Shown in pieces: positions 1 through 7,177 of a stretch of 64,000 nucleotides of DNA. Origin of the DNA: Podarcis melisellensis (taxonomy: Eukaryota); assembly GCA_964234715.1 (NCBI GenBank), contig OZ174276.1, one strand, 5' to 3'. The notes under the pieces were generated by a model, which worked only from the letters and a program-made list of their open reading frames with translations, did no database searches and had not been told where the DNA came from. A program made the translations under genes and the position numbers. Positions within the stretch are counted from its first letter, which is position 1; each line of letters begins with the position of its first letter.

Positions 1-843
1 TTTGAAGACAGCAGTTCTCAAATCCCACCCACCTTGCAGGGCACTAAGAAATTACTGGCTGTCTCAGTGGACTGCTTAGGCTGCAAGTTTATACCCAGGT
101 ACCTAGAAGTAAGCTACCTTGAAGTCAGTAGAACCGAGTATAGCTATATGTAGAATTGATTCAAAACTTCACACTAAACAATTACAAAGAATTTGGGTAA
201 TATATTTGCATCAGCGCATCATTTTAGTTCACAATCACTTTTACAGCTATGATCCAACTGCAGGAATTCATGTTTCAAAATAAACAATTGCGCTTCATTC
301 AGTGATTAAGCAGACACACGCCAGAAATAGACATTCATTTGTCTGAACAGTGGCCTAGGAGTTTCTGCATAGGAAGCAAGAATATTGTTCATCTCTGAAA
401 TATTGTCTGAAAGCAGGGATATATTTCACGACTGGACTTAACTGTCAGGGGTCCTTTATCTTTACCTTTTTACATGATTACCAGCAAAACAAAAAACCAC
501 ACAACTCATATATGAAATGTTTAGGGCAGCCAAGACTCACCAAAACATGGCAAACTTTTGGAGTCGTGGCAAGACTACTTGTGATAAATCATATGCTAAA
601 AGTTGCGTAAAAAATAAATGCAAGAACCAATACGTAATCTTAGGTTCCCTCAGACTCAAATCCTTATTCTTATGGACATTACATGCTCTCTCCCAAGAAC
701 TCTCAAGTTAATTAAGATATGACTTGCTCAAACCCCACTGAGTAGTCCAAGCCCAAACGCGCCTGTAGGAACCAATGGCATGGGAGCATAGACATCTAGT
801 CCATTTAGTCAGGTCTCTGTCTTTCCTCAGTAGAAAAGGCCAG

Positions 844-976
844 CTACGGGGCTGTTTTCTTCTGCGCCAGCTCAGCCAGTTGCTGCTGACGCCTCTGCAG
901 CACCTCCAGGCGTTTCTTTTCATAGTACTCATACTCCCGGGCACGGATCTCCTCTACCTCAGGGAAAAAACGATGT
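844..976 (-). CDS. Unidentified small membrane protein, coding exon 2 (HRFFPEVEEIRAREYEYYEKKRLEVLQRRQQQLAELAQKKTAP*)
   Basis: Strong acceptor tctttttgcctctgtttactgcag|A. Phase matches exon 1; 89+133=222 nt = 73 aa + TAG. Charged, helical-looking composition. Confidence 0.7.
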
Positions 977-1699
977 CTGCAGTAAACAGAGGCAAAAAGA
1001 GAGTTAAGCAAGCCATGCAGCCCAACTCCAGACCTTTGCTTATCAGGCGTCCCTCAACAAAGCTCTATCCTGCCACCCACCGTGCATGTTAGTACACACA
1101 ACCCATTCCTTTTCTGGTTGGGGAGGTTCTAAAACACAGGACGAGTCCTACCTAGCAAAGGACCACACACCGAAAAGTTCTTGGAAAAGAGAGTAATAAA
1201 ACTTCCTACAGCCATTAGACTGATTGAGAGTTCATAAAGAGCTATGAATCTGTGTGGGGTAGGAGCCTTGGGGGAAACTCCAGACAGTCTTATGCACGTT
1301 TACCCAGCAGAAAGCCCCACAGAACAATGGGGCTTACTCCTCGGGAGGGCTGCAATGGGTTTGCAAGCCTGTTTCTGCAAAAACACAAAGCCTTGCAAGA
1401 CTCGAGAGACCAAACAGATTGCATGTGGCACAAACCTTCCTAACCAAAGGAAAACCCAACCCAGCAAAAGTTTGTATCGCAGCAGATCCGCCAGCTTTTA
1501 AAGGCGCCACAGCTACACTTTGGGGGGGGGGGGTCTCCTTTGTGAAGTCCACAAAAATGGGATCTTGCAAGAGGACTGCCCCGGACTTTTTCACGGTGCA
1601 ATCCTCTGTGTGCTTATGATGCAAAAGTTCGGCGGGGATCACTCCCAAGAAAGTGAGCCGAGGGCCAAAGCCTTAAGCTGAAAGGTCAGGGAGCTGGAG

Positions 1700-2250
1700 A
1701 AGCTTGCTGGACTGTGCACTTTGTTTCCGACCTCAACACCAACCCCTGCCAGGCTCCTTGAGCGCCTCCTCCCTTTGGACTCCTGCCCAGGCCCTCTCAC
1801 GGCACCTGTACACGAAGGCGGTCGCCAAGGCACAGAAGATGCCCCCAAACAACAAGGGCTTGGACAGACGTTTCTTCGCGGAGAAGCCCGCCATGGCTGG
1901 AAGGGGCTCGGCGGCGGAGCGGTAGAGCGGACCCTCCCACCTCTAAAGGGTACTTGTTCCCCGCTAGGGTGCTGCCCTTAGTGTAACTCTTCTGCCCGTT
2001 CTTCAACGCAACATCCGGTTTCCTGCGCGTTCCTGGAGTTTTTTTCCGTGCGTGCCGGCGTGTCTCGTCCGGAAGTTCCGTGCGAGGTTTTGCTGTGCCT
2101 TCAACCGGCTGGGCGATAAAGCGAGGCCAGTGCGGGCAAAGGAAGGAGCCATTCAAGGGCAGCAGGTAACGAAGTGGGCGGGGAAACGAACGGAAATACC
2201 CAGGGTTAGATTCCTATGGCAATATCCTATCCTAGACCTCGGTTTACCTG
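1700..2250. promoter_or_regulatory. CpG-island bidirectional promoter (microprotein gene / ARMC7)
   Basis: CpG-rich. Opposed ETS motifs ACCGGATGT (-, 2011-2019) and CCGGAAGT (+, 2069-2076). Donor CAG|gtaacg at 2165/2166 is the likely end of the ARMC7 non-coding exon 1. Confidence 0.7.
1806..1894 (-). CDS. Unidentified small membrane protein, coding exon 1 (MAGFSAKKRLSKPLLFGGIFCALATAFVY+R)
   Basis: ATG in strong Kozak context (ccagccATGG) inside a CpG island. 89 nt ending AG|gtgccg (phase 2). Basic N-terminus followed by a hydrophobic segment. Confidence 0.7.
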
Positions 2251-3128: not shown

Positions 3129-4009
3129 TTAGATCATACACTGGTAAATACTGTAGAAGTGGTGTTTTAAGGACACATCTACACAAGTCGCAAAGTGTTG
3201 CCCTGATGGAGTGGTAGGTTATAGTCACACAGGCTCATTTATTTTACTGGGAGCTTTTCCATAGTTATGTGGAGGAACTGGAGAGTAGGAATACTAGTTG
3301 GTGGGGCATCGATTGAATTTTTGTACGCCCTGTGTCTTCTAGTTCCCTGTTTAGTTAATATTTAAAAGAGGAAGTAGTGGGTGTTCTTTTAAAGGACATC
3401 GGAGAAATTGGCAATATTTTTTGCTGTAATTCTGAGTACACAAAGGTGAGGAGTCTAGTCATAATTAGAAAATGTTTTCTGTCAAATCGCTTCCTGCCTC
3501 ACTGAGAACCTAAGAGTTGTCCTGAACAAGCACATATAAACCATATCCGTGTTTTAAAACACTAAGGGACATGAACAGAGAGTTTGTCATACGGCAGCAT
3601 AGGAAGCTTGGAGGGAGAATGTTATATGCAAAGATCTACCTTGGAAAGTTCAGCTTCATGGTTTGTTTTCAGGTCAAAAGTAGATTTGATTCTACAGACA
3701 TGTGGAAGTACTTTTTTGAGGCAGTGGGATTTTCCGCATTTGGGGATGGAAAATGCTTTTTCTGAACGAAAAGCAAAATGCTTTTAGGAAGCCTGCCCCA
3801 TTCGAAGAATAAAGCTGTAGTTTATTCACTGCTCATATAAAATTATTAGCTTGAAATTATACGTAGTCTAAACAGGCTAAACATTAAAGACAAGGAAATT
3901 GGGATTGAAAATGGAGAAGAAATCTTTCACAGAACCTTTCAGTACTCCTGTAATAGTACGTCCTTCAGAATATTATTTCAAATGAAACTCTGCCTTTTCT
4001 TCTAGCACC

Positions 4010-4100
4010 ATGTCCCAAAACCACAAGGACCTACTAGGTCTGGGTCGCCTTGAATACCTACAGGCCCTAGTCACTGAATTCCAGGTGACTGAGAGCTCCG
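4010..4100 (+). CDS. ARMC7: Armadillo repeat-containing protein 7, coding exon 1
   Basis: MSQNHKDLLGLGRLEYLQALVTEFQVTESS resembles ARMC7 GRLGYLQALVTEFQ. Acceptor ttctag|cacc at 4005/4006; donor G|gtgcgt. Confidence 0.93.
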
Positions 4101-4447
4101 GTGCGTATAATTTATTGGCCACTAGCTGCTTTTGTTCTATGTGTATAAATGCCTTGCCCATCCTAGTTGCTTCTTTCCTCCTCTCAAGCGTTGTTGCTTT
4201 GGTAACACAGTTTTTATTCATTTTCCTCTTTAAACTGTTTAACATGGTTGCATTGTATATATTTTTGTTTGCATTAGAGCATATGACATGCAATATTACA
4301 TAAAAATCAAACAACCACAAAAACTCAAATAATCAAACATAAAAATCAAACAACCACAATAACTCAAACTCTGAATATATTAACAAAGTTGTGTAAAAAT
4401 TTATATACAAAAAATATTACCTCAAGAGTTGTTTTATATTATTTCAG

Positions 4448-4591
4448 AAGCCAAGGAGCAGGTGTTGGCCAATCTAGCTAATTTTGCTTATGATCCTAAG
4501 AACTATGAATATCTCCGGCAGCTGAAAGTATTGGACCTGTTCCTAGATATGCTCAGTGAGGACAATGAAACCCTTGTGGAATTTGCACTTG
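4448..4591 (+). CDS. ARMC7: ARMC7 coding exon 2
   Basis: [48 protein letters not shown]; tttcag| acceptor, |gtaagg donor. Confidence 0.95.
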
Positions 4592-6363
4592 GTAAGGCTT
4601 GGGTTTAAGCTAGATGCTTACTATGAATTAAAGCAATTTTTAAGAGCTTCTCTCAGCCTCCACACTTGAAATTATACTCCCACATCACTTTAGCGATAGT
4701 CAAGTTCGTCAGTCTTGGTATATGGCAGTGGTTTTTTTACCTTTACCTTTATGGCAGTGGTTACGATTGTAAGCTGGGAAGGCCTCATGGTTCAGCCATT
4801 AAATCTCTAACTGTTTAATCCTGTATACATCTGCCCAGACCTATGTTCCACTGTTCAGTGGGGCTTCCTTCTGGGTAAGCAAGCATTGGATTGCAGCCTG
4901 TGGCCTTAAGTAAACTTCTCTCTTTCTCTCTCATCAGCCTCAAACCCCCATTTAATGTTGACCTCTCTTACAATGTGTATAAAAGCAGGATTACTAAGAA
5001 AATGTGTGTGAAACATTTTAGTGTTCAATGCACTATATTAATACTGAATATCATCATCATTAAAATCTGTATCCTTTGTGGGGGCAAGATAAATCTTCAC
5101 AATTAGAAGAAATTTAGTCAGAGCAGCCAGCTAACATTGTAAACTTAGGAAAAGAGCAGTTACTGCGCCATTCCAGTTGTTTTTGGACTCCAACGCCCCC
5201 AGCCAGCACGCTCAATGGTCAGGGAACATGGGCGTTACTGTCCAGCAAAATCTGGAGGGACATAGGTTCTCCATAACCATACAACAGTATCGCTTGTGAA
5301 GAAAACACAATGGGTTAAATGTATCGGCCCACACAGTGTGGAAATAATTGTTTACTTTTATTATCATCATGCTAATTACTCAGCATCCAAAATCTTTCAG
5401 CAAATGATTCAGTTTTATTTCTCGAAGCCATGAGCAAAACAGTTGGTCCCCATGAATCCCAGGACCTGTTAACATACAGGAGATCCCACTTCTTGTAAAA
5501 GGCTGCTTAGTCCGACATGCAGAGTTGAAGGAGCAGGTGAGACACTGCTGAGCCAATAAGAGCAGGAAGCAGACAAGTTTTGAAAACAAAGGAGCATTCT
5601 CTTATGCAGAGGCTGCAGCGCTTACAGGAGCGCACAGTGCCTTCTAGTGTTGTGTGTGGGGAGTTAGTATGAATGCTTTGGTTGGGGGAAAAACCAGGAA
5701 GGCTTTTTCAAAATGAAAACAAGGTAGATAATTGCAATCAGAGGGAGTTGTTATGCGGAGAAAGAAAGAAAACAAAAAAGTTTTTAAGTTGAACAAGAAC
5801 CCAGTGGTGTTCTTTTATTGCAGATAGCTTAACCCCGCTGGGTTCTTGTTCCACTTGTTTTCTTTCTTTTCCCTCTCATAAAAAACTGTGTGTTAAGCCA
5901 ATGAGGAACCTGTGGCAGAGTGTGAAAATAGTTAAACATACACTAGTATTGCCACCAGTCAACTTCGCAAGACATAAATTACATCGTTCCCAGCCCATAA
6001 TGCCCTGTGCCTCTTGCTAGCTCTTCCCTTCAGCATCTTGTCATTTGCCAACAGATTCCAAATTCTTCTTAATCACATTTTGTAAGTGGCAGACCCCCCT
6101 TTTCTCCCCCCAATGTGTGCAATGTTTACAATTCTCATGACAGAATCTGAATATATAATAGAAGTTTTAACCTGTGTCTGCCTGGCTACAACTCCCACTG
6201 AGATCTCCCTCCCTCTAGTAACTAGTTGCTTTCGTTGTGGATGTTGGGGAAAGAGGAAGGGAAAGTCAGGACAGTGCAGAGGAAAGCACGCAAGCTACAT
6301 AGGGAAAGACTTAGATCATCGTTTCCCAAACTTGGGTCTCCAGCTGTTTGGGGAACCCTGACT

Positions 6364-6482: not shown

Positions 6483-6839
6483 CAAGCAACAAACAAACCA
6501 ATAAATCAATAGAAACCAATAGCAACAATAATAAACAGTTTACAGTTATACCCAAATTAAAATTACTGCCAACCTCAACTAAACATTTAACCAATACCAA
6601 CCCAACGAAAAACAAAGGAACCAAAATAAGAAGAGTTTAAAACATTTTAGCCAGTTTCCCCAGCCCAAGAGTTGTTCCAGCAATGTCCCTCCAGCCTCCC
6701 AGAAGCCTCTTTTAGCTGTTCAGGGTGAGTCTGGGTGACTTCGATGAACCTGGTTGCCTCAATACCTGTGGCAGTGGTAAATGTGAAGTAGATGAGAAGG
6801 CTGGTCCTGTCTTTACTATCTCATTCTCTCGTACTTTAG

Positions 6840-7177
6840 GTGGCCTTTGTAACCTTTGCCTGGACAAAATCAACAAAGACTATATCTTGGAGGCAGATGG
6901 TGTCGCAGCCGTTGTCGGTGCCCTCTCCAGCTCCAATGAAGAGACTGTGATGTCCGCAGTCACCACTTTAATGTACTTGACCACCCCCCAGTCTCGCCAA
7001 CAGATCACGGCTCTTCCCGTAGTGGAATGCATGCTGCGCTTCTCCCTCTCGGCCAACCGGAGGCTACGAAACCTGGCCACCATCTTCCTTGAAGATTACT
7101 GCACCCCTCATCAGGTAGAGGCGGCCAAGGCCCTGACCGAACACACTGCCCTAGGGATCCCCCTGCCAAAGGACTGA
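6840..7177 (+). CDS. ARMC7: ARMC7 last coding exon (total 190 aa)
   Basis: [17 protein letters not shown]...[15 protein letters not shown]...ALGIPLPKD*. Acceptor ctttag|; AATAAA at 8169-8174. Confidence 0.95.

Follow-up and report, generated by a model that had tools for sequence, protein, structure and literature searches.

The window, by which is meant the whole stretch of 64,000 nucleotides of Podarcis melisellensis DNA that was analyzed, carries near its left end a minus-strand gene model of two coding exons, in which 1894-1806 is joined in phase to 976-844 to give a product of 73 amino acids. Coding exon 1 (1806-1894) opens with an ATG at 1894-1892, contains 29 codons plus the AG of the codon for Arg30, and specifies a basic N-terminus followed by a membrane helix. 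The predicted transmembrane helix (1808-1858, minus strand) corresponds to codons 13-29 and was delimited from hydropathy, AlphaFold2 and column statistics. The intron (977-1805, minus strand) is 829 nt long with GT and AG ends, and it interrupts the Arg30 codon in phase 2. Coding exon 2 (844-976) is 133 nt in length; its first base completes the Arg30 codon, and 43 codons and the stop TAG (846-844) follow. It codes for a juxtamembrane motif, RHRFFPEVEEIR, and a long charged helix. These exons, together with their translation and phase, had been proposed in an earlier reading of the DNA made without database searches (the sequence-only reading), and they were reproduced exactly from the letters of the window. 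The region is free of Ns, and the microprotein gene is single-copy in the window.

Translation is predicted to begin with Met-Ala-Gly-Phe at an ATG in the context GCCATGG, which is the first start codon past an upstream in-frame stop. A CpG island at about 1801-2200 (GC content 0.58-0.61, CpG observed/expected ratio 0.74-1.19) spans the start of the gene, in agreement with the strong-Kozak ATG in a CpG island described earlier. The donor site reads CAG/GTGCCG (splice boundary at the slash) and divides the arginine codon as AG/A. At the acceptor (977/976; ...ctctgtttactgcag/A) a pyrimidine-rich tract is followed by CAG, so that the pyrimidine-rich acceptor and matching phase of the sequence-only reading are both seen. 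The 3' untranslated region (1-843, minus strand) is incomplete and extends past the left end of the window, and neither AATAAA nor ATTAAA occurs in these 843 nt between the stop codon and the window's edge. At the P. lilfordi locus, which is 94% identical, the first AATAAA is found 873 nt past the stop, and cDNA-like contigs of relatives have 3' untranslated regions of ~0.6-0.8 kb. The poly(A) signal is missing from the window because the window ends before the position that the signal occupies in P. lilfordi. Two caveats that had been attached to the gene model, a weak donor and the lack of a poly(A) signal, are thereby largely resolved, since six other genomes keep the CAG/GTG donor at this codon and the missing signal is explained by the window's edge.

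An antisense ORF of 105 amino acids (775-1092, plus strand) runs over exon 2. Five of five reptiles have one antisense frame open there, with a pN/pS of 0.65 versus 0.33 for the sense frame, and on the basis of these values the antisense ORF was rejected as a second gene and is regarded as an echo of the sense frame.

ARMC7 is divergent from the microprotein gene. Its first coding exon (4010-4094, plus strand; ATG at 4010, end approximate) was placed from the ORF list and a conserved block, and the ORF list indicates more ARMC7 exons at ~4429-4608 and 6725-7177. The head-to-head arrangement claimed by the sequence-only reading holds on examination of synteny in turtle, lizards, sturgeon and perch. 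Caretta, Phrynosoma and Huso share the order ARMC7 (opposite strand), microprotein gene, SLC16A5-like transporter gene, and in P. lilfordi and perch the gene is also head-to-head with ARMC7, an ARMC7-type Arm-repeat gene being present at the matching place. The Gekko locus has the SLC16A5-like transporter gene on the same side, and no ARMC7 gene was called there within 10 kb upstream; the sea cucumber locus likewise has no ARMC7 neighbor within 10 kb. Because the divergent arrangement is conserved, the CpG island is presumed to be a bidirectional promoter common to ARMC7 and the microprotein gene. The ARMC7 start codon is 2.1 kb from the island in the lizard, and the coding starts of the two genes are only ~470 bp apart in perch; the first exon of lizard ARMC7 is probably non-coding and placed within or close to the island. 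Between the island and the exon with the ARMC7 ATG is an 84-nt block (2823-2905) that is 81% identical to a segment of the Gekko locus (3131-3212) in the opposite relative orientation; it may derive from a repeat or be a conserved non-coding element.

Selection and conserved gene structure

Substitutions were counted by the Nei-Gojobori method for each exon with the split codon excluded. In all distant pairs dN/dS is 0.14-0.25, well below 1, with Fisher p values from 1e-4 to 2e-8 (1.6e-8 for the window versus Caretta). When all six frames of exon 2 were compared as a control, the model frame had the lowest pN/pS (0.33, versus 0.48-2.2 for the other five), and it contains no stop codon in any species of that comparison, all of the reptiles compared included. 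BLASTN alignments of the window with Phrynosoma, Gekko and Caretta are confined to the two exons of the microprotein gene (blocks at about 1800-1903 for exon 1 and 802-1013 for exon 2) and, versus Gekko and Caretta, to ARMC7's first coding exon (3984-4094), and the intron sequence showed no conservation versus the distant reptiles. Selection specific to the frame, the low dN/dS, conservation limited to exons and the orthologues described below all bear out the claim that the locus is a coding gene, and a real protein-coding gene is almost certainly present.

The exon structure is as well conserved as the reading frame. Two coding exons separated by a phase-2 intron in the Arg30 codon are found in the window, in four reptiles (P. 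lilfordi, Phrynosoma, Gekko and Caretta), in perch, in the sturgeon Huso and in the sea cucumber Holothuria leucospilota. The four reptile loci share the CAG/GTG donor, exon 2 is 133 nt long in every one of them, and their introns range from 654 to 2951 nt. Since perch, sturgeon and the sea cucumber agree in the position and phase of the intron, the gene structure predates the deuterostome split.

Transcripts of relatives are consistent with this structure. A sturgeon transcript contig of 912 nt, assembled from a sequencing run, contains a complete ORF; on the Huso genome it aligns as two blocks, which meet precisely at this junction and leave out a GT-AG intron of 6.87 kb. In the sea cucumber a 75-aa ORF is carried on contigs of at most 3.8 kb, where the genomic intron is 15.2 kb, and contigs of ~1.0-1.2 kb from a salamander and another vertebrate have a contiguous ORF with long untranslated regions. 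The P. lilfordi cluster in the protein collection has one member, which is genome-derived, and no lacertid transcript contig with the ORF was present in that collection; the gene is presumably expressed in P. melisellensis. The annotated H. leucospilota protein is 115 amino acids in length, with an extra insert of ~40 residues at the conserved intron site, and the transcript-derived 75-aa form fits the genome as a clean two-exon gene; the deposited 115-aa model is probably wrong. The last ~28 bases of contig L007 (1190-1217) presumably match a conserved stretch of bacterial 16S rRNA, the rest of the contig being like vertebrate cDNA, and the 3' end of L007 is probably an assembly chimera.

Orthologues and range of the family

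Searches were run with the two exon peptides separately, and the 73-aa protein of P. lilfordi served as a proxy for the full-length product. That protein was recovered with the exon-2 peptide (98% identical), as was a 70-aa protein of Gekko kuhli, and it differs from the translations of the window's exons by one residue, Leu53 for Gln. Searching with the P. lilfordi protein added Phrynosoma, Sphaerodactylus and the turtle Caretta, and the reptile orthologues are 70-74 amino acids in length. A profile of five reptile sequences gave 23 matches among 1.84 billion representatives, which include the sturgeons Huso and Acipenser (76 aa), the salamander Pleurodeles (75 aa) and many teleosts, and further out a protein of the sea-cucumber type (E 3e-10), the whelk Nucella (4e-6) and another distant clade. 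A second search, with 12 full-length members, yielded 69 proteins at 90% clustering. The residues of the family signature are all present in the window's exon translations.

The 69 proteins are named at their source only as "hypothetical", "uncharacterized", "unnamed" or "Transmembrane protein", and none of the names seen comes from curated reference annotation. At a cut-off of E<=10, with filters that drop most matches above about 0.1, no Pfam family was matched by the exon peptides, by the P. lilfordi protein and a second family protein, or by the 12 members, beyond chance-level hits to SUIM_assoc and DUF6535. No paper containing family peptides or tying ARMC7 to such a gene was found in the literature. 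The sequence-only reading had recognized no named gene, and in this it was right, as no source names the gene and no Pfam family covers it. Its description of the gene as hidden holds only in part, for the gene already appears as a "hypothetical protein" in third-party annotations of P. lilfordi, Phrynosoma, Gekko, Caretta and numerous fishes. Such pipelines predict it only sporadically, and a family model is deserved.

Judged from these sequences this is an ancient animal family, reaching from sea cucumber to fish, salamander, turtle and lizards, with neither name, Pfam model nor literature. The family is new, but the class to which it belongs, that of conserved single-pass microproteins, is a known one. 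In the protein collections searched, the family matches included no protein from a mammal or bird.

In a tree of the family, sequences without a taxon label fall in the teleost or the distant clade, with the exception of P0050. In the distant clade (P0026, P0082-P0090), which derives from eukaryotic contigs, the gene is intronless on contig L014 (10001-10213), and a BTB-domain gene is situated just downstream both on L014 and at the sea cucumber locus. Many of the database "proteins" of the family (P0010, P0012-P0021, P0023, P0024, P0027 and P0028) are exon-2 ORFs that run upstream into the intron. These are artefacts that arise because ORF calling was done on genomic contigs, and they inflate the apparent diversity of the N-terminus. 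On contig L009 (700-1002) such an intron-extended ORF is preceded by the conserved acceptor, …gtttaccccag/A.

Protein architecture and likeness to named proteins

The layout that the sequence-only reading described, a basic N-terminus, one helix of ~17 amino acids and a charged tail, is borne out by hydropathy, AlphaFold2 and column statistics. The N-terminus is basic by virtue of four Lys/Arg, with acidic residues lacking altogether. It is followed by one moderately hydrophobic helix of 17-19 residues, for which the best 17-residue window (13-29) has a Kyte-Doolittle mean of 1.88. The tail contains 10 basic and 8 acidic residues; the N-terminal flank of the helix is +4 and the C-terminal flank about neutral. 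There is no presequence-like stretch longer than 12 residues. The AlphaFold2 prediction, made with 56 family members, has helices at 6-28 and 35-71 separated by a short turn, and its mean pLDDT is 82.6. For two copies of the P. lilfordi protein, the homodimer prediction (score 0.00) speaks neither for nor against a dimer.

Column statistics were taken from 56 full-length family members. Pro13, Phe16 and Gly17 are invariant, and Phe27, Arg30, Phe33-Phe34, acidic residues at 36 and 39, Arg41 and Glu54 are near-invariant. A conserved kink motif, R-x-x-F-F-P-[DE]-V-E-E-[IL]-R, is followed by a predicted charged helix of ~37 residues. Small residues occupy positions 18, 22 and 26 in 100%, 88% and 91% of members, respectively, and all three lie on one face of the helix, a small-xxx-small-xxx-small pattern typical of helix-helix packing. 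The lizard helix reads G17-G18 ... A22 ... A26, and most fishes have G22-x-x-x-A26. The earlier remark that GxxxG is absent is thus literally true for the lizard, but a related packing face of small residues is conserved nonetheless.

Searches by fold were uninformative because the fold is so simple that every match is a long helix. Foldseek found no match in the PDB, a wide VIA-align search returned hundreds of long helices with Z scores of 5.6-5.9, and a shape search of the ESM Atlas returned unrelated bacterial helices. Sequence searches of the PDB with family profiles of 5, 12 and 56 members gave designed helical proteins, a GABA-A receptor helix and CHD1L, all at E >=0.1.

Language-model neighbors of a lizard-type and a distant member, with scores of 0.83-0.91, are UQCC3, PET117, MITRAC7/SMIM20, COX6C, CBP4 and UPF0640, each a small protein that crosses the mitochondrial inner membrane once; for the named families the scores are 0.83-0.88, which is under the tool's reliability mark of 0.9, and these neighbors are leads only. 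UQCC3, PET117, SMIM20/MITRAC7, COX6C and CBP4 resemble the microprotein in size and in having a short N-terminus, one helix and a charged helical tail. They differ from it in sequence, as their Pfam models were matched by none of the 12 members at E<=10. This includes the model MITRAC7_Phoenixin, to which SMIM20 belongs and for which the language-model score was 0.83-0.84. The helix of SMIM20 also starts with L-I-F-G-G. The predicted architecture of the microprotein matches that of single-pass microproteins of the mitochondrial inner membrane, which are a functional class and not one family.

SMIM36, a conserved two-exon SMIM that has been studied in the zebrafish retina, is likewise a small integral membrane protein that is conserved in vertebrates and was long overlooked (10.1101/2023.01.14.524032). 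It differs in that it has 102 amino acids, a central membrane domain, its coding sequence in one exon and a human orthologue. SMIM36 was rejected as a relative of the family given the difference in size and architecture, and it was never recovered by the family searches.

Proposed role and rival explanations

Taken together, the locus very probably holds a single-copy two-exon gene, divergent from ARMC7 at a shared CpG island, whose 73-residue single-pass product belongs to an ancient unnamed family and acts as a membrane adaptor. In such a helical adaptor, the small-residue face would pack against the membrane helix of a partner, the N-terminus would keep to the positive-inside side of the membrane, and from the opposite side the charged helix, preceded by the conserved juxtamembrane motif, would stick out as a docking or spacer arm. 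The location of the adaptor is a separate matter. A mitochondrial membrane, where the protein would serve a complex of the respiratory-chain type in an accessory or assembly capacity, is the likeliest single site but falls somewhat short of probable, the inner membrane being likelier than the outer. The idea of a mitochondrial inner-membrane protein in the sequence-only reading is accordingly plausible. This estimate derives from the layout, the language-model neighbors and the short, moderately hydrophobic helix, rich in Gly, Ala and Thr and flanked by basic residues. A core respiratory role sits uneasily with the findings because the gene is apparently absent from mammals and birds in the protein collections.

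The layout also fits signal-anchor proteins of the ER, which tells against the mitochondrial site. The microprotein could possibly be a type II signal-anchor protein of the ER or endomembrane system, with a cytosolic N-terminus, a charged helix that lies in the lumen or faces a different compartment, and no tie to mitochondria, an alternative that is somewhat less likely than the mitochondrial placement; sites of other kinds share the rest of the probability. The charge difference across the helix satisfies the positive-inside rule for a signal anchor as well as it does for a mitochondrial topology, the lack of a longer presequence-like stretch suits this alternative, and other SMIM proteins occur in many compartments (10.1101/2023.01.14.524032). 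The neighbors with family names in the language-model search are, however, all mitochondrial, which is not decisive. The same is true of the helix itself, which is short and moderately hydrophobic and contains Gly, Thr and Ala, features that are more typical of mitochondrial membrane anchors. Far less credible is that the locus is untranslated and produces a promoter-upstream or divergent non-coding RNA of ARMC7 in which the ORF has been kept by chance or for other reasons. The weak donor GTGCCG and the lack of names from curated annotation would agree with a non-coding RNA, but such an RNA would not hold a frame of 73-77 codons over two exons for >500 million years. From sea cucumber to lizard, neither the frame nor the intron phase nor the motif has been broken, and both the pN/pS of the model frame relative to the other five and the dN/dS values argue against an extremely improbable explanation of this sort.

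A divergent paralogue of ATP5ME that sits in ATP synthase dimers as subunit e does is very unlikely. The sequence-only reading had pointed to a resemblance to subunit e, and a marginal match was reproducible in that a sequence search of the PDB ranks subunit e (6zmr_e, 9bxu_U) first for both the P. lilfordi and the Caretta protein, with an alignment that runs almost end to end and E values of 0.2-0.25 in a small database. The size and layout are alike, both proteins having ~70 residues, an N-terminal membrane helix just past a proline and a long charged helix, and they share a P-x-x-E-E-x-R stretch and LAE near the end. An Artemia ATP synthase chain of 82 residues superposes with an rmsd of 4.1 over 73 residues, but hundreds of unrelated helices reach its Z score of 5.6 as well. 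Subunit e was not matched, however, by the sturgeon or sea-cucumber members or by the profiles of 5, 12 and 56 members, and the Pfam model ATP-synt_E was matched by 0 of 12 members at E<=10, a search in which filters drop most matches above about 0.1. The matched residues belong mostly to the low-complexity charged tail, and the family signature P-x-L-F-G ... F-x-x-R-x-x-F-F is missing from the aligned residues of subunit e. GxxxG in the membrane helix is a feature of subunit e, and the lizard helix is without it. Homology to subunit e was rejected, as the E values are marginal, come from reptile members only and vanish with family profiles; the resemblance is read as a convergent layout combined with a similar charged tail in reptiles.

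To return to the membrane adaptor, time and again conserved single-pass microproteins have been recognized as the missing subunits of membrane complexes or as factors in their assembly. A more specific and doubtful proposal is that the protein is an ancient one, going back at least to the deuterostome ancestor and probably further, which serves a complex of the mitochondrial membrane as an accessory or assembly subunit, that in bony vertebrates its gene has kept its tie to the ARMC7 promoter for >400 million years, and that it was lost independently in mammals and birds. Loss in these two groups, if true, would explain why the gene was never named or studied, and the lack of the gene in model mammals is the probable reason that it has no name, Pfam model or literature. 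Absence from mammals and birds, if it holds, would also make the gene a clear example of deep conservation followed by loss in both endothermic lineages. Teleosts seem all to carry one copy beside armc7, and zebrafish is amenable to study of the gene.
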